From: Octopus sinensis
Taxonomy: Eukaryota
DNA: 64,000 nt
Assembly: GCF_006345805.1 (NCBI RefSeq)
Contig: NC_043013.1
Span: 26,164,001-26,228,000, forward strand
Direction: 5' to 3'
In this document: one piece after another, positions 30,201 to 49,170 of the stretch
Layout: every line of letters starts with the position of its first letter
Numbering within the stretch: the first letter of the stretch is position 1
Program-made: the position numbers and the translations under genes
Notes under the pieces: model-generated
Database searches by the model: none
Seen by the model: the letters and a program-made list of their open reading frames with translations, nothing else
Told to the model about the DNA's origin: nothing

Positions 30201-33200
30201 CTGTTACCCTCAGTAGATTATCCCCAAAGAACTTCCAGATGTCCTCTGTTATATTTCTTTATCTCTTACTCCTCCTTTTCATCAAACGCTTCAGTTAAAA
30301 TATCTCTAAATCGCTGGCCATTTGTAGGATCTTTGAGCTTCCATTACCTCCTTTTCCATATCAGTTTGTGTGTCTAAGTCCTTCTAGCACTGAGTTTCAA
30401 TTTACCAACCACTAACCTATGTTGAGTTATACATTCTTCACTTGGGAAGGACTCTGCATTCACAAGCATCCACCTGTCCCCATTTCTGGTGAGAACGTGG
30501 TCCACCAGTCTTTGTGTACCCACCAGATTGTTAAGTGGCAGGCAACTGCAGGTTTCCCACAGTTAGCACTGCCTTGAAGTAAGCACTGCAAGTCATTTGT
30601 ATCACAAAATTCCAGTTTTTCTCCCTCTTCATTTCTAGAACCAATGCCATAACCATCATGTACATCATGAAATCCATCAGAGCATTTCCCAACATAACCA
30701 TTGAAGTCACCAACCATGATGATAATGTCATTGTCTTTCATCATAGAGGTAGTCTGCAGAAGAGATTCATAGAAATGGTTCTTCTGATTTGCTAAGCTAG
30801 CATGTGAAGCATATGCAGGGATAAACGTCCTGTTATAGTAAACAAGACTATTCTTGGCTTAATAATCCTATCACACACCCTGACTACTTCAATCTCTGCC
30901 AGAAAAATACCTACACCACCTACTCTATCGCCACTGCCCATCCAAAATTTGTATATATGTTCCTTACTCACAATCAGTGTAGCTGAAGCTTCCCTCCATC
31001 GTACCTCTTGTATACTGTACATATGTACATGCCTCTGCTTTAGCATTTCAATGCCAGATTTGCCTTTCATTGTGCCAGCTTTGATGGTGGCAGTTATAAG
31101 CTTCTTGGTTTCTCCTTAAGTGCTTTATCATACTGTTGTAAACTAAAATGACTAGTCCCTCTGTTGGGTCTATGTTGAGAGGATCTTCTTCCTCCCATAC
31201 ATTCTCCACATTTAATAACCTTTAATGTTTGCACTTCTACTCTCTCTCTTCAAAATAAGTAAGTGCAAATGTACTGCTATCCATCCATACACATCAATGT
31301 GTAAAATAATTGCCATTTGTACATAAAAAGGAAAAGGTATGTAAAAATATTCACAAAAGCATGTAAAATGTTGTTGCTACACAAATCCAGTGACAAAATC
31401 ATGAACTAATTATTGGATACAATTTCTACAAACAGATATTATCACTAAAAATTAAAAGAACATTAAAAACAATTACCTTTGCAATTTTCCGGCCATATCC
31501 TACAAACTTTACCTCACCAAATGCATCAGTACTCTCAGATGGACTTGATACCTCTTCCTCATCACTAATGCATCTATCAAAGGCATACCTAAACCAAATA
31601 AACAGCTGAAGTAAAACTCTGGTAGAAAAGGGAAAATAGCAAAATCAAGAGATAAAGGAAACCACACTGCAAAATACAAATATTCACAGATATAGAGACA
31701 TAAACTCATAAACAGAAAAAGATAGATATCTTTTAATTTAGTTGGATAAAATAATGATTAATTTTAGAAATTGAAAATGAAAAACAAGAAATATTTTGCC
31801 ATCAGAAGTAAATAAAAAAAATAGGGTACACAGAGAAATAATGATTCCATGTCTGGAATGGTGCTGCTGCTACGTATACAAATATCATATGACCACATCC
31901 AGAAAGAAAAAAAGTTTCTCAATTGATTAGCACGAAGTCACCAATACACACCAAATTCTGACCCATGAATGTGATGTGTCCTCTGCCTTTTCTACCAGTA
32001 CTACAATAGCCTCTGCTCCTGAGAGCTGGTTGGCCTCTTGCCATCTTACCTGGGTATTACTGGTATACACATCTCTTGTGTCCATTAGATTTGAACCCAC
32101 ACTAACACTATGTCTATTCTCTTGAGGTATCATTCCTCCTCTGGGACTCACTTCCTGCTCATACTTTCTGTCCTAAAAAGTCTTTGGGCACAAAGCAATA
32201 AAAAAATAGAATGATATGCAAAATATATACAAACTCATACACGCTAATACCCGAAGAAGAAAAAGAGAAACTTAGATGTTTGTACTTGTTGAACTCATCA
32301 TTTCCTCTCCTGTCTAACTTAATAGCACCACCTGATAGAATCATCTGTTAAGTATTAAGAACTTTTTGAATCAAGTTTAATGGTGTTATGACCCCTTTCA
32401 AGCAGAAAGATGTTGAATGAGATGTATCCAGGTATCGATGGCTTATCTGGCATCACTTGAAGAAATTTGTCCAGGTTACATTTGAAGGTGATTGAATTTT
32501 TTCCTTCTTTGATTTGTTTTGGGAAAATGTTAAACAGAGCAGGGCCTGTTAAAGAAAAGAAATTGTATTGCTGTGAATTAATGTGTTGTGAGCCTGAATT
32601 GTGTAGGGGACATATGGCATATAGACCCCAGCTTTGGATGAATTTTGCTGGTGCTATATTCTCTACATTGTATAAAATGATGCAGAGCTCACAGCAGCAT
32701 GGGAGAGAATAAAGTTTCAATGTTTTAAGGCAGTCCTAATAATCAAGATCAGTCATGCCCTTCATTTTTTTAGTGAATGCTCTCTGGTGTGACTTAATTC
32801 TCATAATGTTTTGTTTTTTATGAGGGAGACCACAGGCAGATAATCACAAAATTTAATTTATTTCACCTATAATATCATAAATGCTAGTCTATGTTAATTT
32901 CCTGTTTGACTTGAAAGTGGTATGTTTAAAGAAATTATTACCTGATGTATTAAAAGCCTATAGATTATATTTCTTAATTCAATTTTTGACTTTCACATGT
33001 CCTTTATTGAATTTGTTCTTTTAAATCACTAGAATCTATTTTTATAAAATAACAGTAACACAATTGAATAGACATACCCCTTTTGATGTAAAAGAACACA
33101 ATAATAATGGTTGGCCATATCTCTTTCATTGTAAAAATTGTCCCAATTCTTTTTGAAGAAATGAATATTTTAATTCCCTTACAGATCAGATATCATAAAG

Positions 33201-36200
33201 AATTTGATTTCATAGATTATTAGCATCCTAATTGAGTTCAGAAAGGCCTTATTTCCAATGACTATATACTTACATTTCATCATCTGAACCAAAACTCTCT
33301 TCAGAACTTGTTTCTACTTCTGACTGGAAAATAACAGAAACAAAGTTAACAAGAACAGTTTTTCACCCAGCTCTCGAAAAGCAATCTTTGTTGAAATCTC
33401 AACAATGATTTCCTTCTGGTTTTTCTTTCCATAGCATTTTGGCATAAAATATTGTCAAAGGAATACATATTTAAAAAATTTTTTGTTTCAATTTTGGTAC
33501 ATGCTATGTGTATTTACTTACATGTTGTGATAATAAACAGTTTTTACTGTAGTTTGTAGTAGATTTCCTTTATCATCACCCTCATCACTTACTCCACTCA
33601 AGTCTTCACCTTCTTACTCATTTCATAATCTCTGTATAAAAGATTAAATTGGACTAACTGTGCCCAGTACACTATACTCTATCTCGACTCTCCCAACTCT
33701 TGTACTGCCTGTCATCACCTCATTTCAGTCAGTCTGTCATCACTCTCTTGCTTTTTGGACCAAGTCTAGCCAGTAAAACTCTTCCTTCATTCTCTTCTCC
33801 TGTATTGTGTCTTATCCCTCAATATATCACTGTCTCTGAAGGCCATCATACACTGGCCACTTTTCTCCCACACATCCTGGGTCTCTATCATCACTATCAC
33901 CTGGGTTTACATTATCATCAATCATTGTCCTATCTTTTTGGCTACATTGCCTTGCCTATATGAATATGTCCCTGAATTTTCAGTACCTCTATCACACATC
34001 CCCACTATTATACATGCTTTTTATCAATTACCACTGTCACCTATTCCTCTATCACTCATGCATTTTGCTCTAGTAGACATGTGCAGTTATGAGGTCCCTT
34101 TAAACAAATCAAAGACATGGCTATTTCTGTATTGCTAGTACACCTTGTAATGTGTATGGTTGTGAGGCAGTTTTGACAGGGGACAGATTGTGTGTAGTGG
34201 GGCAACATGGCTGTAGGCAAATTATTTTATGCATGGCTATGATTTTACTAAGTTTCACATGTCTTCCCAAGCACAGCAAATCGCCAAATGTCACAGCTCC
34301 TCCACAATGAGGCTCAACAACTGAAGGTCATTTCTCATCACTTCATCCCACGTCTTCTGCAGTCTGCCCCTCCACAATTAGAGATTGGCCTTTCTTTAGG
34401 CAACTGTCCTCATCCACATGCATCACATGACCTTACCAGTGCAGTCTTCTCTTGTACACTATATCTGATGCCGCTTATATCCAATTTTTCTCTTAAAACA
34501 TTTATATTATCATCGTCTTTCGTCATAATCATCATCATCATCATTTAGTATCTGCTTTTCATGGAGGCTTGGGTTTAGGCGATTTAACTGGAACCAGTAA
34601 GCTGGAGAGCTGCACCACGTCCCAGTCTTATTTGATTTCTACAGTTGGATGCCCTTAAACAGCTGATGGCCTTTTCCTTTCATTTGTCCACTCACTCATG
34701 TGTGTGTGTGTGTAGTCTATGTGTGTCGTGTGTTAATGAATAGTTACGATCTATACTGGGCTACATTTAGAAACAGTGACATCACCATTTGCAGAACAGT
34801 GACAAGTGATGACATTGTTGTTTGGGGCTAGGCTGCAACTGATGTCATCTGAAATATCTTGTCAGCTAATCATCTATTTCCTTACTTTCTTATTCCAACA
34901 GATAAAACAAAAAAAAAACTCTTACTTGAAAAATAGGTAAGGATTGGTGACAGGAGGGAATCTCACCATAAGATCTTGTTTCACATGCATCTCCTCATAC
35001 CTAAGCATGCCAGCAAAGATGCTAAACAAATGAACAAAAGCATGAAAATAGCAGTAAAGCTGCATGATAGTGGTGTCAAACCTGGCACCCAGGCCATCGT
35101 ATAATTTTTTTGACATTGTTTTTATTCTTCTTTTCCATTTTATTTTGACATGCACATTGCATTTTTATTCTTCACTTTTTATGAATTCAGTGAGCACATG
35201 CACATTGCATGTTCATTCTTCTTTTCCCAGATCCTACTCAAAACTGTTTACAGATCACAACCAGCTCATGAACTATGTTTGTGAGGAGTGCTTGAAGCAC
35301 TGTTGGTTGTGAAATAAACAGAGCTGCTGTCATGCGAAGCCACTGATGAAATTTCAAATTACTCACTGGTCGCAATTCATGCAATTAAAAAAAATGAATA
35401 AAATAAAATGAAATAAAATCTTTAAAATGCTACCTCTCTCCTTTGTTGTTTTCCAGCAGTTGAAGCTAACATAACAAGTCTACCTCTTGAAAATCTGAAA
35501 TGGAGTGCATCATTGTAAAAATTAATCAATTAGAAAGTTCAAGATAATTAAAGTTAATATGCCTCTCTTTCTCTCCCCTTCCTCTTTCTCTACTCTCCCT
35601 CTCTCTCTCTCCTATTCTATGATCTATTTGGTATCTCATACCTACATGTTGCTCACACTGAGATTCTTCATCACTCTCCCTTCTCCTTCTTCTTGTCCTT
35701 CTTTCTGACCATAGCCACCCATCTACAAGAATAGTAAGCTATGAAATTAAATTATTTGCATATGGAAATGAGGACACCATAAACTCTGCTGATGAATACG
35801 ACCCAACTTAGAGGGCAATAACTCAAATGAAACAACCTGTATGAGATGGATGGATGGATGGATGGGAAATCTGAAGCCATGGTGAAACTTTCAATGTGAT
35901 AGTGTTGTGCATAGTAGAAGGGTGGGTAGGTGGAAACATCTGGCCATGTGTCAGAAACTCCTTTGCTAACATCAAACAATAGCATTTTCCCTTTCAGATG
36001 CAAGAAAGAGGCATATTAAGCATCAACACTTTTGCCAAAGACTATCCTCTTCCTATCAGATGCAAAATAAAAAAATCTATAACAATTAATATTGGTGCAA
36101 CGAAGGGTACATTACTTGGGTGATGGTGACAGTGGAGATGGCTGAGGTAATTGCGGCTGTGGCAGTGGCGACGATGGCTGTGGTGATGTTGGTGATGTTG

Positions 36201-39200
36201 GTGAACTTGTCCTGATAAATGTAGAGTTGAATATTTTAGTCTTTATCAATGTTCAAGACTGAGGAAAGGAAGAAATATGATATTATTGCTTGGAAAAGAA
36301 TTGAGTAAATAGAGGTAAATGGGGGGAAAGGAAGATAAAAATTTAAGATGGCAAAGACAGAGAGAAGCTTGTTGAACAATCCAAGTGTGACAGAAAGGGA
36401 GAAAAATATTGTGCTAAATCATGCAGCCATCTTATTGAATACTACATGGCTCACTCAGTAAAAACAGTGATAAATTACATGGTGTGTTATTTGACAATCT
36501 GAACATTTGGCATCCTTACCACTATTTGAGTATACCTCTAAATTCTGGTGATACCACAGCAAATATAGTTAAAGGGAATTCAGTCAGAGTATCACAGTTG
36601 GTGCTCCTCTGCACTTGTTGGCAGTATGAATCATAACACACAGTTTGGTTCCAGTGAAGTTGCTGGTGGTGTAATTATTTCTGTGTAGGTACGTCATTTA
36701 ATATTTATCCAGACTAAGTGGAGGAGAGTGGGCTTTTAAAATGTTATTATAGTAGTGGTCTGTAATGTCTGTATGTGCCTGGTCACCTGAAAGGTACTTT
36801 GCTGCAGGTTTGATGGAGGAAGGGGTCTTTGAAACTTGCTGCAGCAACAAAATATGTTCCTTGCATGTCCAGATAGTCATGCATTTTCTAGTATTTTTGT
36901 TTCATTGTGCAGGTGGTCTGTGAATAATGGTCTGTATAGAACCTGTTAGGATGTGTAATGTACTGTTTTATGTTCTTTGTAGTTTACTGTGGTTTGTTGT
37001 GGGTGATTGAGGGCTCAAATAGGACAGTCATAATCGCTGATGCATCTAATGCATTGTTTGTATACCATTAATGGTATTTTTATTAGGTTAATAAACTCTC
37101 TTCTAAACCTGAAAGCTGATGTCATGTAGAAGAACAATAAATTCACAATCGGAAAATTTTTGAATGGTGTTACAAAGAGGATCTGTCATTTTACTTACAC
37201 CTTTCAAACAAACTTCCATGACATTCCCACACCTCCACAATATATTTACAGACAGTTTCATAAGAAATTCATACTCACATCCATCTTTTAGAAACAGAGC
37301 TACATAATAACAACAAAATTAATGTAGCATGATATAAATTTATTGATGGGATTATTTGTAATGTTTGTGATGTGATAAACTATATTATATTCTATACATA
37401 TATCTATTTATATAGTAGGAGGAGATGTCAAAAGTTCAGTTTATGAAAATGTTTGTGATGATCTGTTAGCTATTACATCAATATAAATTTTTGTGTGTTG
37501 GTTAACGTCTCCCAAATCTTCCATCTTACTTCTTGCCAGTAACATTAGAAAACATAAAATACAACCAAATATCACACTCCATAACATATTGCAGATACAC
37601 AAAGAGAATATACAAAGAGTTAGTACATTTTTGCAGCAACATATACATCTACATAGAAGAATATAAATGTGATAGATAAAAGGTCTTTTTATTATGACTA
37701 TATACTTACCATTCATCTTCAGAGCCACTGTTCTCAGCTTTTTCTACTACCTATTAGATTAGAGTGAAAAAAAAACATACTGAATGTAAGAAGTAATGAT
37801 TTAGAACTGGGTCACTCAAACACTGTGACATAGATTCCATGATTTTTTAATTGGATTATTCAGTAATGAAGACATGTTTGTATGTCAATAGTATATATTT
37901 GAAGGTACAATAAGAGAATGTAGCTACTATTATCTAATGGAAATATTCCAATCTGAAATAACACAGAAATATATGAATTAGTTTTTTTTTCTTACAGTTT
38001 TCACAATGGTGTGTTGATTAAAACACACAGTAAGAATGGAAGACATCTACTGAATGAAAAACAGTTTTGCATGATGGCAACTAAGGTTATCCAGCAGACT
38101 AAGACCAAATAAGAGAGATATGCCAAAAAGTGATGAACTTTTGTCTGAGGATTCAGAGTATAACACATTAGATGTAGAATAATCTTTTCTACTATAGGCA
38201 CAAGGCCTGGAATTTGTGGGGAGGGGAATAGTCGATTACATCAACCCCAGTACTTGACTGGTATTTAATTTATCAACCCCAAAAGGAAGAAAAAGCAAAG
38301 TCGACCTTAGTTGATGAAGCAAACCTTTGTGAAACTTTCAGATTCTGATCACTAATTATTCTTGATACGTGCGTGTGTGTGTGTGTGTGTGCGCGCGCGC
38401 GTGCATGCGTGTGTAATATTGTAGTTTGGTCTACCATTACAATATATATTACCTGGGACTACCCATATAACATAGTATCTGGGTCTACCAATATAACATA
38501 TAGTAGCTGGGTCTACTGATATGAAAAAGTCTCGTAGATTGCTCTTCCAGTACGAAATATAGTTGTCTGCTCAACTAAAGTGAGAAAATAAATTTTAAAA
38601 TATTCATAAGAAGAATATGCAATGTTGCTGACATACAAGTCTATTATTCCAATGTATTCTAAATGTAGCAGAGGCATTCTAGCTTTGAAAAGAATAGTAT
38701 TAAATGCTCTGTTTCTAGGAAATGTAGTCAACCAATTGAAGAATGAATTGAATACACATAGTGCAATGCGCAGTAACTGCACAGTGCCAGGCTATTCAAA
38801 CTATGTGTAGGCTAAATAAATCATTGTTAATGCATCTTCTTTGTTGATGTTTTTTTCTGTATGTGTGAATGTGTGTGAAATATAGTTGTTGATTTTTCAG
38901 TATTGAAAATTAATGTCAAACTCCTTAAGATGCCAACAGCTCTACCAGTATGGAAATTTCCAAATTGCCTACCTGCATGGAACATTTTAGCCTGTTTTGT
39001 CAATGTGAGAAAATACATAATATTCAGTAGTAGAATATACAGTGCTGCTGCTATACAAATCCATTCATGAAACTTTGAAATATTCAATGGTCACAATTTA
39101 CGCAAAGATAATCATTGAAATATTAAGTTTTAAAAGAATTACTTTCGTTGTATGTTTTCTTATAACATTTATAATGTCATTCAACTCTTGTTCACTTCCT

Positions 39201-42200
39201 TCCCGATGTTTTTTGAGGATCATTGGTGGTCTGAAAAATCAGTCAATGAGAAAATGCAAGATAGATAAAATTAATTTGTTCTAATGAGTGTACAGTGAAA
39301 CACTTCAGTTTTTATCTTATATCTGAAAGTGGGGAAAGAAAGAAAGGGAGTGTTATTGTTTGGAATGGAATCAAGTAAACAAAAAGGGAAATGAAGAGTA
39401 GAATGTGAAAGAGTTTTTAAGAGAAACCAGTGTCAGGAATGTGTCAAGAATCAGGGTTGAAAGGTGAACAAAATTAAAGAAGCTAACAAATTCAGATAGA
39501 AACAGCTAGTATTTTAAGCAAAGGTTGAAAATTCTAAATATATTATCAGAACAAGAGAATAATGCCATATTTATCAGGTCTCTGTGTACCAGAGTTCAGG
39601 CCTAGTGAGGCAACTGATGTTGTGGCTAAATTCTCTTTGCATATTTTTATGTCTGAGCAAGCTGAATGGGAAAAACAGTGATTTCATGGTACAGTTCTAT
39701 TTGTTCTCTGGATGTATTGTTTGTGTCTGGATATCTGAAGATAGCCTTTCATGTACTTAATACTGTGGAACATGAAGCTCACTAGCAACCATGGAAGATC
39801 AATTGCAACCAATTATCACACTCCCCAGTATGTATATACATATCACATTCACATAAGAGAAAAATACAAGGAGTGACATACAACTCCTCCATCACACCAC
39901 TCTCATACATAAAAGAACCTACATTTTATGATAAATAGCTTATGTGAAATGACTATATACTTACCTCTTATCAAATGGAGAGAAACCATTCCCACATTTT
40001 GTTTCTTCTTCTCCTTCCTAAAATGATGAACAGAAAAAATGAAAAGAAAAAGATATAATAAAATGTTGGAAAGATGAAGAATTTGAAAATCCTGCCATAT
40101 GACAGGACTATATTTCATACCTAATAGTTGATTGGTCTACCAATAAGAGATATAATAGACAGTTTTGCCAATTGTAAATCTAATTGATGACTCTCCCAGT
40201 ACTAATGAACAGTACCTAGCTCTACCAATATAAAATAAAATAGTAGCCTGCGACACCAATGTAAGAAAATATATAAGAATATTCACAAGCAGAATATACA
40301 GCATTCCTTTTATAGAAATCTGTTGATGAAATTCTCAACAACCCATTCATCACAATGTATGCAAACAGAACTAATCAAGAATATTTTAAAATTTTACATG
40401 ATTTACTTCTCTGCTTTTCCCAGCATTTAGAATTTTTGGTTGCACAATTCTTTTCTTAACTCCATACCGCTTTACACGTTTCTTTGAGGTTGCTTGATGT
40501 GGTCTGCAAAATTAGTCAATTAAGAAATTCAAGATTAGTAAAGTGAATTTTTTTGTCAAGAATCTGAGGAAAAGGAGTAAGTTGTGCTGTTGTTTAGAAT
40601 GGAATCATAGAATTGGAAAATGAATTACATTTTATGGAATGATACTGGGAGTGAAAGGAATACCCAGTGGTTGTATTGTTATGTCTTGGATAGTGGTCAA
40701 GAGTACAAGGTGGTCAAAAAGTAAAGGAAGTTAGGAAATTAACTGTAAACACCTTCCGGCTCTGGAACTCATTGTGAATTTCAGTTAGTAAATATATTCT
40801 TCTTTTCTCTCTCTTTCTCTCTGTCCATATGTGCATGAATATAATTAGAATAAACATTAGCAGATACTATGGATTTCCCATTGAAAACACAAACCAGTTG
40901 CTTAATTTGCACAAACCAGTTTGCTTAATTTGCATAAATCTGTTCCTTATATAAGAGAGAAACAATCAATATCACAAAATACTTCTTTCACCAACAGAAA
41001 TATGTTTGATTGTTAAAATTACTGATATTATAGCTGTCTCCAGAAATGATGGATTGCTATTTTAAATGCCTACCAAATTTTGCTTTTTTGATCCCTGTTG
41101 ATTCATGAATAATACCAATGATCTAATGGAGTAAGATTTGGAAGTGTAGCAATTTAGTATAGTTCCTACATATAATGAGAAATGTGTTACATGGAAATCA
41201 ACTGATCTTAATAGTTATCTCCATTGCTCATTATTTGTAGCTTATTAACATTCCCGGGAGTTTTTGTCAACTAATCACTGGGATAGTCTCAGATTATCAA
41301 AGTTTTTCAACTCACTATATACCATATCTAAAACCCTGTATTATATATATGTACTTGATGTTAGGAAGGGTATCCAGCCATAGAAACCATGCCAAATCAG
41401 ACTGGAACCTGGTGCAGTTCCCCAGCTTACCAGTTCCAATCAAACTGTCTAACCCATGCCAGCATGGAAAGTGGACATTAAATGATGGTGATTATCAGCA
41501 CAATATTATCCCATTTAAGGACATATTTCTTGAATTACCTCAATTTTATGTTTTCCTGCATCCATTTCTTTATATCTTCCTGAAAATAAAGAAAAGATTT
41601 TGAATGTTAGATGAATGATTAAGTTCCAATTACTAAGATTAATGCTATAAACACAGAATCTCAAATTTTATAACAAATTATACAGAGAAGACATAACTGA
41701 ATACAAATAGCACAAGACATGAGATTAGCCAAGATTATCTGGCGGAGAAAATCTGATCCATTTTAACAGATACAATGATTTTCTTTTTCCTTATTTAGTT
41801 TTTAGCATGGTAGACTGGTTTTGACATGGGACTTGAATGAATTAAATCTTCTGGATAACAACAGTGCTACTTGAGGATAACAAAATTTATTTAACCAATT
41901 TAAACATTCAGTAGAGTTTATAAGCCATGTCAGACTTACAAAGTTCTACAATACCCCTAATATATCTTTAAAAAATGGCTAGAAAGAAGGGAAAATAGAG
42001 TATTTTTGTAGCCTCTATAAATCGGAGAATATTTTTGTTAGTGGATTCTTCAAAATAAAAAACACCTCCAGCCTTGGTAACCCTTTTGAAACCATTTTAT
42101 AAATCTCCTCTCTCCCAAACTGCTAATTTTTAGAGCTGGAACAAATAATTCCATAAGGTTTCTTAATGTTTCTACTAATAGAATGTTTCCATACATGTTT

Positions 42201-45200
42201 CTACTAATAGAATATAATTTAAAGGAACATGTCACATTCAGAGCCAACAAAGTCATTGTATGTTACTCTGTCTTTGATGCATTTTATACATTGACAGATT
42301 TGGCTGAGATAATGGAGGTATACAGAGAAGGGTAAGACTAGTTATGAGACAGTAGAAGAAATGGTGAACTGTGTGTTGAGGATACAGGGTTTAACAAAAC
42401 TATGCAGGATCAAGAAGGATTGTGATATATAATATAAGGAGATTATTCTGACGTGATTGATGGGTCATTGACCACTCATTAGAGGATAAGTACTTCCTCA
42501 TTCATTGCAGATGGATGCACGGTATGCAGAATAGTCTACATAAGACAGTTAAGTTCTGATCTATGCAACAATGTGTCAGCACAGAAAAATAGATGTTCAA
42601 ATGATAACGATGATGTTTCATAGTATTTATCATATTGGTTGTTTTATACAAAGCACATGAGAACAATTTTATGGAAAGAGAAATACTAAGTCATGATAAC
42701 TTCTTATTTTCCTTCAAACAGAAACTGAAACTAGGACTTGAAACTGAGAATTAAACCCAGGTCAATGTCTCAGTTCACTGGATGTTTATCTCCCAGTGTA
42801 AGGGGTTTATAACTACATTCTTCAAAGTCTTTCCTCCATTATTTATGAAACCAATACCATTCAACTTTCATATTATACTCTCTGATTATTTTTCTGTCTT
42901 TCACATTAAATAGAAACCATGGCAAAGCAGACATCAGAGCTGAATACAGTCCTCCAAATCATTAGATCTTACTGAACTGTCCTACCTATGTTAATAAAGA
43001 AGATAAAGGTTAAATGATGATATTATATAAACATAATGCACAACACTGCATGTATTTGAAAACCGAGATGAATTTTAAAGGGATTGAACATCACTTTATT
43101 GAAACCTTCACTATGAAACTTTAAACAGATGCAAATACACATTGTTGGTATATTCACAGACAAAAATAAAAGCAATTATCTAGGTATATTTCATGGTTCA
43201 TTGATGAGTAATCAATGAACAAGTTACAGCCCTCATCTTTCTGTCCACAAATATAACTTGCAACAATTCCTATTTAAATCAAACACAACAAATATTCAGC
43301 TGTAATGAATGAAAACATTTACATGTAATGTATTTGTTGGTGATTAAATGATTAATGAATATTAATGCACAATTCACAGTGTATCAGAAACCAAAGATAA
43401 ACAGATGTAAATACACCTTGTTATGCTCTTCATATACAGAAAAAAATAAAGGAGATTATCCTGATGTGATATTTCATTTAGGCCAGATGAGGGATTAAGC
43501 CATATTGTGCTCCACTTTCTATATCTGTGCAGCTATGGCACTTGTTTACGTTGAAAATTGACTCTATATTTATATCTGCTTTTATTCAATGCATCATTAT
43601 GAAAAGTTGCCTTATTTAATAAAATGTTAGATATTCTTTCACTCATGTAATCAATTAATACTTCTAAGTATTAATAGTAGGGTGGTTAAAATTATCATTG
43701 ATGTACATACTTGTTTTTCATTCAGTTTTCTGCAGCATTGATAATCATTTGTCTGAATGTTAATTATTACCAGTTTGGCTGATAATGTGCAAAACTGCAA
43801 AGATCTAATCTAAAGCTTAATTTTTTTTTTAGCATATCTTTTAGAATATATAGAGCATGTATCTCAACTCTTTCCAAACAATCCATATCGCATCAAAGAT
43901 ATACCGTATATCTATCATTCACGCAGAATTGTCACCAAAAAATAGGTATTTCCTGGAATATATGTCTATATACATATATTCTTTTATTTGTTTCATTCAC
44001 CTGATTGTGGCCATGCTGAATCATTGCCTTGAAAGTAAGACCTGTGTTTTATATATATATATATACATGCACACACAAGTAAAACATGTGTGTGTGTATA
44101 CACACATACACATTTTGTCAACACACACACACACACACTCGGAATGCTCACAGCAGCCATATTCCTACCACTCTATGTCACACTGGTGAGACCCATATTG
44201 GAGTATGGGATTCAAGCCTCTTCTCCTTATCTCCTCAAAGACATACAGCATCTCGAAAGAGTCCAGAAGCTGGCTACCTGCATGGTTCATGGTCTCAAAA
44301 ATTTGTCCTACGAAGAAAGGCTGAGGACGCTCGACCTTTATTCTCTTGAAAAACGCCGCCGCCGTGGTGATCTCATTCTCGCCCACAACATCATAAGCGG
44401 AAAGTGTAACCTCTCGAAAGAGCTGTTCTTCACTCCTGCTCCAGAGCGTCGGCTGCGGGGTCATTCCGGAAAGCTCTACCTGCAACGATTTCATCTCAAT
44501 CGAAGGAGAGGAGCTTTCTCCGTCCGGGTTGCGGATCCGTGGAACAAGCTGCCAGACGAGATGGTGAAGATGCCGACGACCGCTTTGTTCAAAGCCTCCC
44601 TGGACCTCAAGTGGCCTGAACTCTTTACATGAACACCACCCTGTACTTAACTCCATGTCCCCCTACATGGCCTTGCTATTTGCTTTTGAGCCAAATTAAC
44701 TAACTAACTAACTAACATATATGTGCAGCACTGTTTCTTGCCTTCCAGGGAGGTCTTTTAATGCATTATAGAAAAAAAAGCAGCAAAGATATAATGTACA
44801 TAAAGATATAAAGAACATCATAATAATATCTATAAAATTGGGAAATTTTACAAAAAGACTACTTAAAGATCTTTGATTAACAAATTTATGCATCTCAGGT
44901 GCAATCCAAGTTCTTATCAGATTTTACATGCATTTATACAACCATCATACATCCATCATGACTGATGTACTTGTACAAGTGCACATCAGCACTTATGGCA
45001 AAATAGCAGCTCTTGCAAATAATGTTAAAAATACTAACTGGGCTACTAATACAAAAATTAATACCAATATGAAAAATAGTAACTGGTTTTACCATTACAA
45101 GAAATAGTATCCAGTACTAATCCAGTATACAAGAATCTGCTCTACCAATATGATAAACAGTAACCTGTTCTACCAAAATGAAAATAGTCACCTCTGCTAC

Positions 45201-45975
45201 CTTTATGAAAATTAGTAGCTCATTCTACCAATATGAAAAATAGTAGCTTGTTCTAAAAAGTTTGAAAGCAGCTTATAAAAAAATAGTTGGTTCAACCATT
45301 ATGTAATACAGTAGTTATCTCTAGCAATAGGAAAAATATAGTTTGCTCTGTGACTATGTAAAATAGTAAACTGATCCATCAACATGAAAAATAGAAGGTT
45401 GCTCAATCAATTTGAAAAATGTTTGCCTGCTTTATTCATCTGCAAAATTTATACACTGCTCTACATATATGAAAAATAGGAACCATCTGTACAATGCTAT
45501 ACTGAAAAATATGTTAAGATATTCATAAACGAAATTTATAATGTTGCTGTTAATACAGAGTCATTATTGAAATTCCAAACTACTCATCGGTCATAATTTA
45601 TAAAAACAGAAATAATAAAATTAATGAAAAATATAAGATAATACTTTTTTTGGTTGCTCTTTGGATTCTGGAGATTGTTGTCCCCATAATGTATCATTTG
45701 TTGTTATATCTAACATTGGTACTGACTCATATTGAGAGGTTGGTGATCTGCAAAAAATGAACCAAGGAGGAAGTTTAAGATTAGTAAAGTTTATTTGTCA
45801 TATGGGAAAGGCAAATGTGGATACAACTTGGCACCAGTGACATCACAACTCATTTCTACAGCTGAGTGAACTGGAGCAATGTGAAATAAAGTGCCTTGCT
45901 CAAGAACACAACACACAGCCCGGTCTGGGAATTGAATTCACTACCTCATGATTGTGAACCCTGTGACATAGTTAG

Positions 45976-46017
<42 letters not shown>

Positions 46018-46318
46018 TGTGTGTGTGTGTGTGTGATATATTTTCACTCCTCCCACCATTGTCCACCTTCTTTTGTCTCCTTTCCTTCTACACAAATGAT
46101 TGTTACTCACAAGAAAAAATATATACAAATACAGGTAGCATATTAAAGAAATAGGTGTAGGAGTGGCTGTGTGGTAAGTAGCTTGCTTATGAACCACATG
46201 GTTCCAGGTTCAGTCCCACTGTATGGTACCTTGGGCAAGTGTCTTCTACTATAGCCTCGAGCCAACCAAAGCCTTGGGAGTGGATTTGGTAGACGGAAAC
46301 TGAAAGAAACCCATTGTG

Positions 46319-46370
<52 letters not shown>

Positions 46371-48109
46371 GTGTGTGTATATGTTTGTGTATCTGTATTT
46401 ATCCCCCCAACATTGCTTGACAATCGATGTCCCCATAACTTAGCAGTTTGGCAAAAAGATATCAATAGAATAAGTACTAGGCTTACAAAGAATAAGTCCT
46501 GAGGTCGATTTGCTCAACAGTCAAATGACTGAAACAAGTAAAAGAGTAAAAGAGTAAATTGATGATTAACATCATTACAATAAACAATGTCATTTTTCAT
46601 ACTGAAGAACTGCAACTACTTTTCTCTTGTCAATGAAAAACTACATTCTGTTCCCAAAGCTGGATCCAATGATTCTGCTGATGTCTTTGAAAGAACTAAC
46701 TGGAACACTAAGTCATTTAATTCTATGTCAGCAGGCTGTTTTGTTCTCCGTGCTCCTCTTCAAGGTACAGCACTCCAGTTCATTGAAAACATTTAACTTA
46801 TTAGACACAGGAACATTCACTTCCGCCCAATGAGGTACAGTTTTAAATGTCAAGGGCAAATCTAGGTAATCAATTTTCAGCTTGTATCCAGCATGCAAAT
46901 AATACAAAAATAGCAATTTTCAAGATGATTTATCAGTTCTCATCAAACTATTGGCACAACAAAATGTTATCTGGAAAGGTTTGTCTACTTACTTATCATC
47001 AGAAGATGTCATAGTGTGTTTCCCTTTTCTTTCTCTTCTTCCAAACTAAAAAATATAACAAAATGTTAATTGCCACAAGATAAGATGGAATTAGAATTTC
47101 TATTTGTTAGAAACAAGATTTAAGTAAAATGTATGTTTAAAGGAGGAAGTATATAAGTAACAATAGCAAGAAATAAATAAAGAATGACCACTTCCAAAAT
47201 CCAACTACACACAGATATAGACACAGAAAATCCATTTACACAAAGGATATTTTTATTTTCAATTTAGCTGTTGAGACCTAAACATATTTAGTATCACTGC
47301 TTTCAAATGAAGATCTACAATCACATCTAAAACTATTGTATTTTTATAAAGTTCAGTATTTATGATATCATTGTAAATCCTTTAACATTTTATTACTTTA
47401 GATACAATTCAGAGTATTGGCCAGTAAAGGACCATTCTGTCAGTTTATTAATTTTAACTTGACACTAAGTGTGTATGTAGATTATACTATCCTTAATATT
47501 TGAACAATATCACAGGAAATGTTTGTACATATTAAATGTATTGATATGTTAAAAACTTTTGAGAGCAAAAGTATTGCTTGATGCTGAAGAGATACTCAAA
47601 TCTTTGATCATACACTAGTCTATGTGAAGTATGTAGGAAAAGAGTTGAATGTATGACCTACAAACTCAATTTGCCAATTTAGAGGCCCATTTAACCAAGT
47701 TAGTTTATCACTTATTTAGGTGAAAATAAAGGGATAGTAAACTTTGAAGGCCTGATACATTGGTTTGGTTTCATGAAATAAATTAGAGATGACACCACTA
47801 CCACCATGGGATAGTAGGATACACATCTAAATCTATAGGACAGTACATTTAGAACTAACTTATGTAACATGTTCTTTTTTTAAGATGGTAAAGTGTAATA
47901 TATATATTGGATATCATAGTCCCAGATACGCTATGTCTAAAAGGTTTGTAATGATCATTGCTATAATACTACTTGTCATAAATCTGTTTCATGTGAACAG
48001 AATATGGGTTAAACAACAGTAACAGCAATAATATGCACAGACTCGTTCACATTTTTTGTTTTCTGCTCTTCTTACTTTCAATACTTACCTGTCTATTTCT
48101 ATCAGGCAT
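3096..48109 (-). CDS. TRPM: TRPM-family (melastatin) TRP channel gene, 5' portion, about 21 coding exons; continues beyond the left edge
   Basis: Spliced translation gives TDAFGEVKFVG..FVRAD..LPKLLISVTGG..GAWILSAGLHTGVVK..LDPNHSHFFLVDDG..FGVEIDFRKTLE..IPAVAVMVGGGPGTL..IPVVIVKGSGRAADVLA..FDVVVLKALFK..LRLALEWNRIDIAK..ALRDDRVGFVKLFMEHGV, the hallmark TRPM MHR/SLOG motifs in the correct order. All junctions are GT-AG with matching phases. The subfamily cannot be assigned from this part alone. Confidence 0.93.
3373..3507 (-). CDS. TRPM: TRPM exon, 135 nt, phase 0-0: TGTLNNFMLFALRDDRVGFVKLFMEHGVSFKELLAEENIESLFRM
   Basis: Matches the TRPM AL..DRV.FVKL..E.GV motif; ctcag| acceptor and |gtaagt donor. 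Confidence 0.95.
5300..5740 (-). mobile_element. Purine/pyrimidine-skewed relic, possibly Penelope-like
   Basis: LCHPTLSLLYHTLSENFSYLLS resembles the PLE L.YHP.L...I...F..L..D region; a similar skewed tract lies at 28590-29330. Confidence 0.3.
5999..6096 (-). CDS. TRPM: TRPM exon, 98 nt, phase 1-0: (V)NNNKFEKLRLALEWNRIDIAKNELFTEEFLWP
   Basis: TRPM L.LAL.WNR.DIA motif; ttacag| and |gtaaga. Confidence 0.95.
6225..6400 (+). mobile_element. tRNA-derived SINE family (gagctggcagaatc..ttctgagttcaaattc..ggggtcgataaa..agtaccagt); other copies at about 12705-12830(+), 12975-13125(-), 27030-27160(+), 27305-27515(+), 38195-38310(-)
   Basis: Several mutually similar copies with A-box/B-box-like heads (gagttcaaattc). 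Confidence 0.75.
8022..8218 (-). CDS. TRPM: TRPM exon, 197 nt, phase 2-1: SFPKLLQRKLENIKEII...LVTLFESGSAEEFDVVVLKALFK
   Basis: Matches the TRPM ..D.D.AIL.ALLK motif; phases fit both neighbours; the acceptor (aataag|) is weaker. Confidence 0.88.
8339..9513 (+). mobile_element. 5'-truncated RTE LINE: ORF C-terminus, 3' UTR with about six 62-bp tandem units, (GAT)n tail
   Basis: ORF 8347-8703 RNEASMLRWMC..RRLRWYGHVARM..RGRGRPRKTW; repeat unit starts at 9031, 9093, 9155. Confidence 0.93.
10733..10821 (-). CDS. TRPM: TRPM exon, 89 nt, phase 0-2: GSGRAADVLADAYQTVLENVNENSKDITD
   Basis: GSGRAAD motif; attag| and |gtttgt. Confidence 0.93.
13430..13539 (-). CDS. TRPM: TRPM exon, 110 nt, phase 1-0: TEVKIPAVAVMVGGGPGTLKSVYDSISRNIPVVIVK
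   Basis: SLOG IP.V...V.GGPGT..PVV motif; ttttag| and AAG|gtcagt. Confidence 0.95.
13851..14225 (-). mobile_element. tRNA(Arg)-like-headed SINE (octopus OR-type)
   Basis: Minus strand reads gcaatagcccagtggttagggcagtggacttgcggtcgcaggatcgtggttttgattcc, followed by a non-tRNA body; the family name is from memory. Confidence 0.7.
14693..18440 (-). mobile_element. Near full-length RTE LINE (APE endonuclease, RT, PHD finger, 3' UTR 67-bp repeats, (GAT)n tail), inactivated
   Basis: APE motifs VGTLNV..MQEVRW, VAGDFNGHVG, SQIDYIL; RT motifs QFGF.PG.STTDAIF, AFVDMEKAFDRV, GVHQGSVLSPLLF; YADD Tyr codon is TAG (about 16324); several frameshifts. Confidence 0.95.
19000..19480 (+). mobile_element. Helitron PIF1-type helicase relic
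   Basis: Translations across frameshifts: CYMIVLDLSTMVNKRALEALDKSMKD, VLLSRDFHQTHPEIQKVTRTNKIHACLK, FRNLRANLLGD, collinear with Helitron helicase motifs (IIWDE.TM..K.A.EA.D, LL.GDFRQ.LP, L..NMR). Confidence 0.72.
19972..20149 (-). CDS. TRPM: TRPM exon, 178 nt, phase 0-1: GSWPAEYYITDDESCSKTCPLDPNHSHFFLVDDGTSDTFGVEIDFRKTLENAIVQNKIQ
   Basis: LD.NHSHF.LVD.G motif; tctag| and AAG|gtaagt. Confidence 0.96.
20865..21690 (-). mobile_element. Degenerate RTE 3' fragment with tail
   Basis: Homologous to 14693-15730. Confidence 0.8.
21765..21920 (-). mobile_element. CORE-like SINE fragment (another at about 45820-45965)
   Basis: ttcttgagcaa..cacttt..cattgctcyagtycactcag, CORE-like segment behind a tRNA-like head. 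Confidence 0.55.
22035..22930. mobile_element. Two convergent mariner 5' ends: + copy about 22035-22320, - copy about 22318-22930
   Basis: Both begin with a TIR like CAAGGTCTGATCAATAAGTATCCAGACT; MTEKTEQRISIKFCQKLG on +; AYAKLQKVYGEE..ITIHELSEDVQIS..VSAKFVPKLL on -. Confidence 0.8.
23040..23990 (+). mobile_element. Degenerate RTE RT/C-terminal fragment with tail
   Basis: LYVDDL, FCYL.DQISSG, KRLHWFGQMIQM; (GAT) tail. Confidence 0.75.
24060..24223 (-). CDS. TRPM: TRPM exon, 164 nt, phase 1-0: AWILSAGLHTGVVKYTGKAI...LVTISVAPWNSVRNKDTLKKKD
   Basis: GAWI..G..TGV.K and IGIAPW-like motifs; tgcag| and |gtaaaa. Confidence 0.94.
25380..26500 (+). mobile_element. L1/Tx1-clade ORF2 C-terminal relic
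   Basis: VLAYVDDIMLIVS..ARINLNK..NWDEFTSRVASLTQKW..LFHFLWKG, plus a decayed C-terminal zinc-finger region; many stops. Confidence 0.7.
27171..27303. repeat. Compound trinucleotide microsatellite (ACT)n(TTG)n(TGG)n(TAT)n
   Basis: Read directly. Confidence 0.97.
27560..27740 (-). CDS. TRPM: TRPM exon, 181 nt, phase 0-1: FVRADHETSMETMIYLIEKMWSLSLPKLLISVTGGRKDFLLSSHLKEAFGYGLVKAARST
   Basis: W.L..PKLLISVTGG..F motif; tacag| and CAG|gtatag. Confidence 0.96.
28093..28314. mobile_element. piggyBac-like MITE
   Basis: ttaa|CCCTTTCAATACCA ... TGGTAACAAAAGGG imperfect TIRs; TTAA on the left, decayed on the right. Confidence 0.6.
29440..31190 (-). mobile_element. Old, internally deleted RTE relic (APE and C-terminal parts)
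   Basis: MKGKSGIEMLKQRHV..IQEVRWR, IMVGDFNGYVG, homologous to 17500-18100. Confidence 0.75.
31477..31588 (-). CDS. TRPM: TRPM exon, 112 nt, phase 2-0: YAFDRCISDEEEVSSPSESTDAFGEVKFVGYGRKIAK
   Basis: TDAFG.I.F motif that opens MHR1; tttag| and AAG|gtaatt. Confidence 0.93.
32355..32720 (-). mobile_element. CR1/L2-type LINE C-terminal relic
   Basis: FSLTGPALFNIFPKQIK..FKCNLDKFLQVMPDKP, a typical CR1-group ORF2 end. Confidence 0.65.
33274..33323 (-). CDS. TRPM: TRPM N-terminal extension exon B4, 50 nt, phase 0-2: SEVETSSEESFGSDDE(M)
   Basis: ttttccag| and |gtaagtatatagtcat; only one open frame, which fits both neighbours. Confidence 0.8.
35434..35494 (-). CDS. TRPM: TRPM N-terminal extension exon A5, 61 nt, phase 2-0: FSRGRLVMLASTAGKQQRRE
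   Basis: catttcag| and GAG|gtagca; upstream intron is homologous to the A2 acceptor flank. Confidence 0.62.
36116..36211 (-). CDS. TRPM: TRPM N-terminal extension exon A4, 96 nt, phase 2-2, Pro/Ser-rich: TSSPTSPTSPQPSSPLPQPQLPQPSPLSPSP
   Basis: ttatcag| and |gtaatg; GC-rich, coding-like island in AT-rich intron. Confidence 0.72.
37710..37750 (-). CDS. TRPM: TRPM N-terminal extension exon B3, 41 nt, phase 0-2: VVEKAENSGSEDE(W)
   Basis: taatag| and |gtaagtatatagtcat. Confidence 0.75.
39143..39230 (-). CDS. TRPM: TRPM N-terminal extension exon A3, 88 nt, phase 2-0: PPMILKKHREGSEQELNDIINVIRKHTTK
   Basis: tttttcag| and AAA|gtaatt; open frame with fitting phases. Confidence 0.75.
39965..40017 (-). 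CDS. TRPM: TRPM N-terminal extension exon B2, 53 nt, phase 0-2: EGEEETKCGNGFSPFDK(R)
   Basis: cattttag| and GAG|gtaagtatatagtcat. Confidence 0.78.
40407..40503 (-). CDS. TRPM: TRPM N-terminal extension exon A2, 97 nt, phase 2-0, basic: PHQATSKKRVKRYGVKKRIVQPKILNAGKSRE
   Basis: ttttgcag| and GAA|gtaaat; open frame. Confidence 0.75.
44140..44717 (+). mobile_element. 5'-truncated CR1-clade LINE, intact ORF2 end plus (TAAC)n tail
   Basis: LYVTLVRPILEYG..LERVQKLAT..LSYEERL..L.L.SLEKRR.RGDLI..RGH..FS.RV..WNKLP; 3' UTR ends in taactaactaac. Confidence 0.92.
44977..45011 (-). CDS. Candidate exon B1, 35 nt (41 nt with the donor at 44971), phase 0-2: SCYFAISADVH
   Basis: Sits at the module position expected for a B exon and supplies the required phase, but the donor is a degraded form of the shared motif (gtacaagtacatcagtcat). 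Confidence 0.35.
45030..45480. repeat. Degenerate 28-bp minisatellite (ctaccaatatgaaaaatagtagcttgtt); paralogous arrays at about 42160-42210, 40120-40330, 38850-39060, 38430-38640
   Basis: Unit starts at 45142, 45170, 45198, 45225. Confidence 0.8.
45645..45747 (-). CDS. TRPM: TRPM N-terminal extension exon A1, 103 nt, phase 2-0: SPTSQYESVPMLDITTNDTLWGQQSPESKEQPKK
   Basis: ttttttgcag| and AAA|gtatta; acceptor flank homologous to A2. Confidence 0.72.
46152..46545 (+). mobile_element. SINE (ggtgtaggagtggctgtgtggtaag..ggttcagtcccact..accttgggcaagtgtcttc) with internal (TA)n; a - copy at about 59030-59262
   Basis: tRNA-like head plus CORE-like ccttgggcaag segment; more than one copy. Confidence 0.75.
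46993..47045 (-). CDS. TRPM: TRPM N-terminal extension exon B0, 53 nt, phase 0-2: FGRRERKGKHTMTSSDD(K)
   Basis: tatttttag| and |gtaagt; the other two frames contain stops. Confidence 0.72.
48089..48109 (-). CDS. TRPM: Putative start-codon exon, MPDRNRQ (exon probably 48089-48147 including 5' UTR)
   Basis: CAG|gtaagt donor in phase 0; ATG at 48109 with an in-frame upstream TGA in the same exon. Confidence 0.6.
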
Positions 48110-48769: not shown

Positions 48770-49170
48770 TATGGCACCCGTACCACTGTCACATAAAAGG
48801 CACCATTCAAACATGGCCAATGCTAGTGCTGCTTCACTGGTTCCTATGCCAGTGGCACATAAAAAGCACCATTCGAGCATGGCTGATGCCAGTGAAACCT
48901 GACTGGTACTCATGCTGGTGGCACATAAAAAGCAACATTTGAGCATGGTTGATGCCAGTGCCACCTAAGTAGCTCCTGTGCGTATGGCATGTAAAAAGCA
49001 CCCACTACACTCTTGGAATGGTTGGCATTAGGAAGGGCATCCAGCTGTAGAAACCATGCCAGATCAGATTGGAACTTGGTGCAGCCTCCTGGCTTGCCAG
49101 TCCTCTGTCAAACTGTTTATCCCATGCCAGCATGGAAAGCAGATATTAAACAATGACAATAATGATGATT
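48770..49170 (+). mobile_element. RTE 3'-UTR-only copy; similar tails at about 4560-4780(-), 12190-12480(-), 28380-28580(-), 34290-34660(-), 41360-41490(+)
   Basis: Shared ggaagggcatccagctgtagaaa motif and (GAT)n tail. Confidence 0.75.

Follow-up and report, generated by a model that had tools for sequence, protein, structure and literature searches.

Twelve small exons on the minus strand of an Octopus sinensis locus, spanning positions 48109 to 31477 of the window (the whole 64,000-nucleotide stretch that was analysed), run into a TRPM SLOG/MHR1 domain, and this raises the question of where these exons came from and what they add to the channel. Taking the explanation as a whole, we consider it likely from the sequence that a TRPM2-like (melastatin-type) channel gene has its 5' coding part here and that its first two coding exons were copied to about five units, probably giving the channel a disordered front end of some 235 residues. 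The window ends inside the SLOG region, and matches to the Pfam families Ion_trans and TRPM2 are found in the orthologous Octopus bimaculoides gene. In PMC13143021, some octopus “TRPM-like 2” proteins are moved to TRPS, the sister family of TRPM-beta. The array is a new case of exon-cassette duplication, and a term search of recent cephalopod TRP and metazoan TRPM surveys returned no mention of exon duplication or of an N-terminal extension.

The exons are named by type (A or B, with the first exon M1 and the unpaired exon X36) and by position in kilobases; P0042 is the annotated O. bimaculoides protein model described below. In the order of transcription they are:

48109-48089, minus strand: M1, first coding exon (ATG, MPDRNRQ), 21 nt, phase 0-0, donor gtaagt; orthologous to the start codon of P0042.
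47045-46993, minus strand: B47, type B, 53 nt, phase 0-2, encoding FGRRERKGKHTMTSSDD; present in P0042.
45747-45645, minus strand: A45, type A, 103 nt, phase 2-0; present in P0042.
41579-41539, minus strand: B41, 41 nt, phase 0-2, canonical TRPM N-terminal motif exon EDIKKWMQENIKL.
40503-40407, minus strand: A40, type A, 97 nt, encoding the basic peptide PHQATSKKRVKRYGVKKRIVQPKILNAGKSRE; present in P0042.
40017-39965, minus strand: B40, type B, 53 nt, followed by a donor 16-mer at 39964-39949 (whole feature 39949-40017).
39230-39143, minus strand: A39, type A, 88 nt.
37750-37710, minus strand: B37, type B, 41 nt, with the donor 16-mer (whole feature 37694-37750); present in P0042.
36211-36116, minus strand: X36, Pro/Ser-rich exon, 96 nt, phase 2-2.
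35494-35434, minus strand: A35, type A, 61 nt.
33323-33274, minus strand: B33, type B, 50 nt, encoding SEVETSSEESFGSDDE, with the donor 16-mer (whole feature 33258-33323).
31573-31477, minus strand: A31, 97 nt, phase 2-0, the canonical exon CISDEEEVSSPSESTDAFGEVKFVGYGRKIAK at which TRPM conservation starts.
27560-27740, minus strand: next canonical exon after A31, FVRADHETSMETMIY...ARSTG, where Pfam LSDAT_euk begins.

All array exons are bounded by AG acceptors and GT donors. The lengths of the type A exons (103, 97, 88, 61 and 97 nt) all leave a remainder of 1 on division by three, those of the type B exons (53, 41, 53, 41 and 50 nt) a remainder of 2 and that of X36 none, so that exon lengths and splice sites bear out the alternation of A (phase 2-0) and B (phase 0-2) exons, with one phase 2-2 exon, that the first-pass annotation had proposed. 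Each B plus A pair is frame-neutral, as had also been claimed, and the frame is kept across copies of unequal length. Spliced together the 12 exons give a stop-free chain of 801 nt (267 aa), with 235 aa ahead of the canonical A31, in keeping with an earlier estimate of about 230-250 aa before MHR1. A45, A40, A39 and A35 are open in the used frame only, and the probability that all ten non-canonical exons would be open by chance in the frame set by the homologous splice sites is 3e-6 when judged against random intron segments and 8e-8 against shuffles. B37 ends in TG, giving a TGA stop if it is joined to any A exon, and only X36, because it starts with G, avoids this; the acceptor site of X36 corresponds to an intronic position within the A39 module. 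For A35 and B33, support comes from this window alone.

Two of these exons carry motifs known from other channels, EDIKKWMQENIKL at 41579-41539 and DAFGEVKF within 31573-31477, and the same two motifs are found in octopus relatives and in a fish TRPM2-like protein. B41 matches the KKWIQENIKL of O. sinensis relatives, where the relatives read KKWIQENIKLRNLRDEEASNPCDAFGEVKF, and B41 and A31 are the only B and the only A exon to keep the canonical motifs. One B exon had been left as uncertain in the first-pass annotation: it is an exon (B41), and its identity is that of the canonical WIxENIK TRPM motif exon. Since B41 is canonical, the canonical N-terminus lies within the array and is divided by it, and the array does more than precede the TRPM start as an extension. 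The canonical TRPM2 N-terminus, known from solved structures such as 6drj, 6mix and 7aov, shares the WIxENIK-type and DAFGxxxF motifs and the SLOG/MHR1 domain with this gene, but the spacing between the motifs, about 55 residues in the fish TRPM2-like protein and about 14 in octopus relatives, would be 176 residues here if every exon is used, with 59 further residues in front. At a second O. sinensis locus (L002) a B exon is followed by an A exon across a 3.7-kb intron with no modules between them, which we take as the ancestral state. No sequence similarity of B41 to B47, B40, B37 or B33 was detectable, and its homology to these is drawn from position, phase and size only.

Evidence for duplication was found in the introns, where blocks of two repeat families recur around the A exons:

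47136-47270, minus strand: copy of the block upstream of A31 (BLAST 72% over 126 nt to 31622-31744).
45754-45796, minus strand: D8 acceptor flank of A45.
45458-45640 and 45062-45479, minus strand: D5-like block preceding a 28-bp minisatellite, in the intron after A45.
40508-40550, minus strand: D8 acceptor flank of A40, the reference copy of the family.
40278-40370 and 40126-40243, minus strand: D5 block and 28-bp minisatellite, in the intron after A40.
39235-39277, minus strand: D8 acceptor flank of A39.
39019-39111 and 38412-38586, minus strand: D5 block and 28-bp minisatellite, in the intron after A39.
35298-35560, minus strand: D8 flank (35518-35560) and D5 block (35298-35390) bracketing A35.
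31346-31476, minus strand: D5-homologous intron block after A31 (BLAST 67.6% over 136 nt to 39019-39145, E 8e-9).

The acceptor flanks form family D8 (at 45754, 40508, 39235 and 35518), with 77-81% identity, while family D5 is a 93-nt block downstream of the donors (at 40278, 39019 and 35298) to which BLAST adds 45458-45640 and 31346-31479. The minisatellite repeats themselves were placed at 45062-45267, 40126-40243 and 38416-38516. An upstream block near 40570, 39325 and 36258 also aligns, and the 64 kb contain exactly three instances of the donor 16-mer GTAAGTATATAGTCAT, one at each of the B40, B37 and B33 donors, where chance would give 0.08. The shared acceptor flanks, upstream block, minisatellite and identical donor motif that had been reported from a first reading are thus all present. 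The A39 and A40 regions are 66.5% identical over 323 nt (E 3e-28), and the A copies are tied to A31 through its downstream intron block (E 8e-9); this sharing of intron flanks makes the type A copies paralogues of A31, the canonical DAFGEVKF exon. Counted on a MAFFT alignment, the A paralogues are 37-55% identical in their exons and 50-71% in their downstream flanks, with upstream flanks at 70-80% among A45, A40, A39 and A35 and at 41-50% in pairs with A31 (free-end global alignments, in which shuffled controls reached 0.68, were dropped). The donors of all five A copies share one column of this alignment, as do the acceptors of A45, A40, A39 and A31, the acceptor of A35 lying 42 columns downstream. 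The copies are adjacent, on the same strand and in a repeating order with homologous flanks, which upholds the tandem duplication of a two-exon module. The block at 47136-47270 could be what is left of a dead A copy heading the array; at L002 a block matching it also sits upstream of the A exon. Array modules were not found in the rest of the window, nor, away from the corresponding gene positions, in some 85 kb covering two further octopus loci (L002 and the O. bimaculoides locus L001). No known RNA families were found in the window, and no inverted repeats joining the conserved intron blocks were found beyond low-complexity runs.

The orthologous O. bimaculoides locus (L001) is collinear with the window, and seven of the array exons (M1, B47, A45, B41, A40, B37 and X36) are in its annotated model P0042, a protein of 169 aa named “formin-E” whose sequence appears under XP_014781146.1, XP_052830057.1 and UniProt A0A0L8GGZ8. 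The stop of this model is a read-through into the X36 donor (AAg taa), just ahead of N gaps at 23372-23471 and 23830-26545 of L001 (the second of them in CM046617.1), and the A35 orthologue lies inside an assembly gap of 2716 N. The downstream O. bimaculoides TRPM model (994 aa) begins at an internal Met of the exon after A31, and A31, which is 98% conserved, is therefore in neither model. A Pfam scan found no formin (FH2) domain in P0042, and the name probably reflects its proline run; on sequence grounds “formin-E” most probably represents the 5' end that the neighbouring, truncated TRPM-like gene model lacks. The B40-A39 pair is absent at the O. bimaculoides locus.

The array exons were compared between the two species. 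B41 is identical at 40/41 sites, A31 at 95/97 and B37 at 39/41, B41 and A31 together being about 98% identical; B47 is identical at 43/53 sites with flanks at 91-96% and A40 at 82/97 with a downstream flank at 143/150. A45 differs by an in-frame 15-nt indel and X36 is 135 nt long in O. bimaculoides, a 39-nt difference that stays in frame. Introns differ at 520 of 8290 sites (6.3%), uniformly with distance from the exons, and canonical exons at 3/138 sites (2%), whereas extension exons differ at 57/390 sites (p = 1.5e-8), or 42/315 without X36 (p = 7e-6), which is about 13-15% and 2.3 times faster than the introns. Between paralogues, too, divergence is greater in exons than in introns. The first-pass annotation had described the introns as better conserved than the exons: the exons do diverge more (13-15% against 6.3%), but this reflects fast exons and not any special conservation of the introns. 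Against the exons' own synonymous sites dN/dS is 1.7 (p = 0.4, two species compared), while pN of 0.16 against the intron rate of 0.063 gives p = 3e-7 for the same two species; that no stops have arisen since the two species parted (p = 0.11) is weakly informative. The pace of these coding parts hints at selection on the extension exons that is either diversifying or very relaxed; a higher mutation rate in these A-rich stretches could produce a similar pattern.

In the translated chain, Pfam LSDAT_euk (PF18139; SLOG, MHR1/2) begins at residue 266 (E 1.6e-33), and among solved structures TRPM2 chains match best (E 3e-51), the PDB TRPM2 alignments beginning at STDAFG. The non-canonical copies, M1 and X36 have diverged into basic, acidic/Ser-rich and Pro-rich segments, as the peptides had been described at first reading, and the disorder suggested for them then is also what is predicted: mean hydropathy, at 0.355, lies under the Uversky boundary (0.424), and AlphaFold2 gave P0042 a pLDDT of 57 and placed one helix over the WIxENIK motif and a second, just 6 residues long, in the Pro-rich tail. 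From these predictions we infer a disordered, cytoplasmic extension of about 235 residues before A31, and this tail probably carries phosphorylation and docking motifs. Its sole relative among 5.8 billion proteins is P0042; HMMER, run exhaustively over 1.84 billion representatives, added no further relative (two other matches, to bacterial repeat proteins, were spurious), and the 5.8-billion-sequence collection includes no protein that joins X36, A35, B33 or A31, or in which A31 occurs.

The only annotation has the array as a separate gene, and on that account a small “formin-E” gene, born from duplicated 5' exons, encodes a disordered protein of about 170 aa ending after X36, with the channel transcribed separately. 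The 169-aa model stands under three accessions and the read-through stop after X36 (AAg taa) is in the window as well, but the model halts just before the assembly gap that hides the next exons and has no formin domain, the sole WIxENIK exon of the locus sits inside the array, and A35 and B33 show open frames and good splice sites and continue in frame to A31, which starts in phase 2 and so needs an upstream coding exon. We therefore regard a separate gene as unlikely and infer that the exon array is continuous with the channel transcript.

It is quite unlikely, in our judgement, that the non-canonical copies are dead duplicates, never or almost never spliced in, with an mRNA joining B41 to A31 and perhaps starting from a Met inside B41. 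Such a join gives ..ENIKLRCISDEEE..DAFGEVKF, the same layout as in the relatives, one of whose models starts MQKNIKL, and purifying selection was not found in the copies (dN/dS 1.7), but the chance that ten exons would be open in the homologous frame is 3e-6, all length changes (including those of 15 and 39 nt) are multiples of three, the exons outpace the neutral introns instead of matching their rate, and seven of the exons are in an annotated coding model. That the repeated blocks might be dispersed copies of a mobile element, with the “exons” as chance open stretches alongside, is very improbable indeed: the window is rich in SINE- and LINE-type repeats and the module holds an internal minisatellite, but the copies are confined to 17 kb on a single strand in one repeating order, no copy was found in the remaining 47 kb or, away from the corresponding gene positions, in L001 and L002, and the universally conserved DAFGEVKF exon has such blocks beside it too. 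A mobile-element origin was rejected, as copies were not found outside the array in the window, L001 or L002 and the donor 16-mer is, within the 64 kb, only at the three B donors.

For a channel gene with a duplicated 5' end, the sequence of events may have been as follows. The ancestor would have had two small coding exons, B (..KKWIxENIKL, phase 0-2) and A (..DAFGEVKF..IAK, phase 2-0), as in octopus relatives, and this two-exon cassette, with its intron flanks and 28-bp minisatellite, would have been tandemly duplicated to about five copies. A single B (B41) and a single A (A31) would then have retained the canonical motifs while the other copies, M1 and the recruited Pro/Ser-rich X36 diverged, with splice sites, phase and open frame kept in the diverged copies. 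Serial splicing would place about 235 residues before A31, 176 of them between the motifs. Because every B plus A pair is frame-neutral, pairs could be gained or lost by unequal recombination, and they could be skipped in splicing without breaking the frame of the channel. It is conceivable, though rather doubtful, that the extra exons are both under diversifying selection and used combinatorially, giving fast-evolving N-terminal tails of variable copy number; any B donor other than that of B37 could then join any A acceptor, and any A donor any B acceptor or the next canonical exon, in frame.

Tandem exon duplication is well known and includes mutually exclusive arrays such as Dscam (Kondrashov & Koonin 2001; Letunic et al. 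2002). The octopus array resembles these in its local duplication, homologous flanks, conserved phase and possible in-frame alternative use, but its unit is an exon pair that is frame-neutral only as a pair, its serial inclusion gives an open frame, its copies do not encode similar peptides, and no docking/selector complementarity was found. A mutually exclusive array of the Dscam type was rejected, the peptides being unrelated and inverted repeats between the blocks not being found. Titin PEVK exons and nebulin super-repeats are multi-exon block duplications that are disordered and differentially spliced. They share with the octopus array the tandem amplification of small-exon blocks, low-complexity disordered sequence and a copy number that varies between species, whereas the array here, known from genome sequence, is a short one of about five units at the N-terminus of a channel, in which an ancient conserved motif survives in a single copy of each exon type. 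In snake-venom phospholipase A2 and conotoxin genes, exons reportedly evolve faster than introns (Nakashima et al. 1993-95; Olivera et al. 1999). The octopus exons are alike in diverging more than their introns (13-15% against 6.3%) and in that nonsynonymous changes dominate, but they encode a predicted cytoplasmic channel tail and not a secreted toxin, and their dN/dS above 1 is not significant alone.

For annotation, “formin-E” likely belongs to the neighbouring TRPM-like gene. Since two close species differ by one cassette and exons outpace introns, the locus lends itself, in compact form, to testing how selection acts on disordered tails and how cassettes are gained and lost in cephalopods. 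The array, as read here, shows the stepwise gain of a long disordered N-terminal region by a conserved channel, and if the combinatorial reading were true, an octopus sensory-type channel would be a counterpart of the hypervariable venom and immune genes.

On its minus strand the window, which is animal DNA high in AT and dense in repeats, encodes the N-terminal part of a TRPM2-like channel in a series of exons. Translation showed that exons near 31.5, 27.6, 24, 20, 13.5 and 10.7 kb encode the SLOG/MHR1-2 domain, and the channel N-terminus matched Pfam LSDAT_euk (E 1.6e-33), with TRPM2 chains as the best relatives among solved structures (E 3e-51) and octopus TRPM-like fragments as the nearest proteins in the public collection. 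The exon A31 (exons are named by type and kb position) carries the universally conserved DAFGEVKF motif and starts in phase 2, so that an upstream coding exon is required.

Fragments of LINE-type retrotransposons lie on the minus strand at 15375-18186 (reverse-transcriptase domain confirmed at 16523-17074), 29500-31100 and 52700-54100, with relatives in the orthologous Octopus bimaculoides locus (L001) and in an O. sinensis locus with related TRPM-like genes (L002). Adjoining LINE fragments, in both orientations, are arrays of one family of 62-67-nt units (GGCACATAAAAA..CCATCCGAGCG..) at 8954-9342, 14903-15207, 48783-49002, 50004-50170 and 52199-52413. Open frames at 3-407 (minus) contain among them a helix-turn-helix domain of the kind characteristic of Tc1/mariner-type transposases, an internal telomere-like (CCCTAA)n run of ~10 units lies at 57960-58033, and large tandem duplications (299 bp x2, 99% identity; 400 bp x2, 88%) are found at 58164-58768 and 59642-60420, the latter overlapped by a CCHC zinc knuckle open frame (59604-60134, minus) which looks retroelement gag-like.

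Upstream of MHR1, twelve exons were placed from sequence and checked by script, all with AG/GT splice sites (12/12), and chained they give 801 nt (267 aa) with 0 stops. Type A exons (phase 2-0) are 103, 97, 88, 61 and 97 nt long, type B exons (phase 0-2) 53, 41, 53, 41 and 50 nt, and the single phase 2-2 exon, X36, 96 nt. When 33-48.5 kb was compared with the entire window and a repeat finder was applied, real, local repeats emerged, all on the same strand:

Repeats of the exon array, by repeat finder and self-comparison
45754, 40508, 39235, 35518, minus strand: 43-nt acceptor flank
40278, 39019, 35298, minus strand: 93-nt block 3' of donors
45458-45640, 31346-31479, minus strand: weaker copies of the 93-nt block
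39795-40059, 37551-37800, 33242-33355, minus strand: second repeat unit

Three of the A copies are followed by a 28-bp minisatellite, and the 16-mer GTAAGTATATAGTCAT has three occurrences in the 64 kb, precisely at three B donors (chance expectation 0.08). The first-pass annotation had proposed a tandemly duplicated two-exon module here; its exons, phases and open frame, shared acceptor flanks, identical donor motif, minisatellite and upstream block (which aligns among the copies) were confirmed in every particular, and the self-comparison it had called for revealed repeats at module level. Its interpretation is supported at its core, with four refinements.

When the A copies were aligned, the acceptors of A45, A40, A39 and A31 shared one column, as did the donors of all five copies, and the intron 3' of A31 was homologous to those 3' of the A copies. 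These aligned splice sites and homologous introns identify the type A exons, as judged from sequence, as duplicates of the canonical exon A31. The spliced window peptide matched one protein, the 169-aa O. bimaculoides model P0042 (E 8e-17), which reads EDIKKWMRENIKL between its A45 and A40 segments; 41579-41539 (minus) encodes EDIKKWMQENIKL, with acceptor and donor both good, and this exon, B41, which had been left uncertain, is the canonical TRPM N-terminal motif exon (WIxENIK). The short interspersed repeat that is most frequent in the window has a copy at 41355-41500, ~40 nt 3' of the B41 donor, and O. bimaculoides shares this copy (L001 16891-17059).

In octopus relatives the sequence is KKWIQENIKL-R-NLRDEEASNPCDAFGEVKF, with B joined straight to A, and at L002 the B and A exons are separated by 3.7 kb that holds no extra copies, an arrangement regarded as undivided. 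The window gene is made up of about five B+A cassettes, with the canonical B in the second and the canonical A in the last. No remaining sequence similarity was found between B41 and the other B exons, and their homology would follow from position, phase and size only. The block at 31622-31744, just 5' of A31, recurs at 47136-47270, 5' of B47 (72% over 126 nt), and is also found 5' of the A exon in an O. sinensis relative; the 47136-47270 copy may be what is left of a dead A copy heading the array.

The P0042 gene was located on O. bimaculoides chromosome CM046617.1, flanked by two TRPM genes, in the 33-kb L001. Collinearity of L001 with window 57.7-20.5 kb marks the window as DNA of a close relative of O. 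bimaculoides. Annotated as "formin-E" (XP_052830057.1; L001 10001-23106), it has no formin domain and is composed of M1, B47, A45, B41, A40, B37 and X36, its stop codon arising from read-through into the X36 donor (AAg taa). A short way 3' of it, runs of N at 23372-23471 (100 bases) and 23830-26545 (2716 bases) occupy the expected place of A35 and B33. The gene annotated next to it, a 994-aa TRPM (L001 29630 onward), begins at an internal Met of the exon after A31 (equivalent to window 27713), so that A31, 95/97 identical at L001 ~28.1 kb, lies in neither model. The split of the models coincides with the N gaps, and we infer that both are one gene divided by an assembly gap; "formin-E" looks like the 5' part of the neighbouring TRPM-like gene. 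Two RefSeq accessions and one UniProt entry list the identical 169-aa sequence, which may point to transcript support.

The B40-A39 pair, exactly one frame-neutral cassette, is absent from O. bimaculoides, where window 40097-38314 is replaced by 955 nt of dispersed-repeat fragments; with an identity of only about 66% between A40 and A39, the pair is old and was probably lost in the O. bimaculoides lineage. Also absent there is ~1.7 kb of the A45-B41 intron (42996-44717), probably a lineage-specific insertion, which holds a 165-aa open frame (44168-44662, minus) with no Pfam match. At L002 (CM016875.1) the models P0033 and P0034 are chimeric, fusing one TRPM-like gene's C-terminal SLOG exons to the next gene's first exons, and a 1423-aa model on the opposite strand has four SLOG domains, which indicates a dense tandem array that is difficult to annotate.

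Each of the ten non-canonical exons is free of stops in the frame set by homologous splice sites (10/10; joint chance 3e-6 to 8e-8), in four A copies the used frame is the only open one, and length differences among paralogues and between species (A45 15 nt, X36 39 nt) are all multiples of three. Rates were taken as differences at aligned sites between the window and O. bimaculoides:

Differences between the two octopus species
Introns: 520/8290, 6.3% (5.3-6.7% at every distance from exons)
Extension exons, all: 57/390, 14.6% (p = 1.5e-8)
Extension exons without the poorly alignable X36: 42/315, 13.3% (p = 7e-6)
Canonical exons: 3/138, 2.2%

The claim that introns are better conserved than exons holds as a fact but not as intron constraint, the intron rate being uniform; the contrast is caused by fast exons. 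With exons changing at ~2x the intron rate, paralogous flanks are still 60-80% identical and exons 37-55%. The nonsynonymous rate exceeds the intron rate (p = 3e-7), the synonymous rate (0.098) is nominally raised but not significantly, and dN/dS of 1.7 (34.5 nonsynonymous, 5.5 synonymous differences) counts against purifying selection.

Dead, neutral duplicates should match the intron rate, and this reading of the non-canonical exons is contradicted by the excess as well as by their open frames and frame-keeping lengths. Candidate causes of the excess are diversifying or very relaxed selection on an expressed protein and, alternatively, local mutation bias in the A-rich stretches of these exons. 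Derivation of the array from a mobile element is contradicted by copies that are strictly local, ordered and on a single strand. A product that stops after X36 may exist as an isoform, but its reading as a separate small gene is undermined in three ways: the O. bimaculoides model that ends there does so just before an assembly gap, the sole WIxENIK exon sits inside the array, and A35 and B33 are open with good splice sites.

Tandem exon duplication, amplification of multi-exon blocks and genes whose exons outrun their introns are well known. Term searches of two recent surveys, of cephalopod TRP channels and of metazoan TRPM evolution, gave no match for exon duplication or N-terminal extension. 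The array is a new instance of exon-cassette duplication, in a TRPM-like channel that may belong to TRPM-beta or to the sister family TRPS. Its cassette comprises two exons, which are frame-neutral together but not singly, and the two canonical motifs survive in different copies.

In a charge-hydropathy comparison the 235 residues that precede A31, which abound in S, K, E, P and R, lie on the disordered side of the boundary. An AlphaFold2 model of P0042 (pLDDT 57) has one helix at the WIxENIK motif and a short 6-residue helix in the Pro-rich tail; A40 is strongly basic (net +10), B33 and A31 acidic and Ser-rich, and X36 Pro-rich. The extension would be a cytoplasmic disordered tail and linker before MHR1, probably bearing phosphorylation and docking motifs. 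As all A exons begin with A, splicing B37, whose last two bases are TG, to any of them would create TGA; B37 must therefore be followed by X36, whose first base is G, and this arrangement is kept in both species. In transcripts the array is predicted to run on into the channel and may be alternatively spliced, its function being likewise putative; the length of the predicted tail would be changeable by whole cassettes, and a direct B41-A31 junction, if used, would be in frame and give the layout of the relatives.
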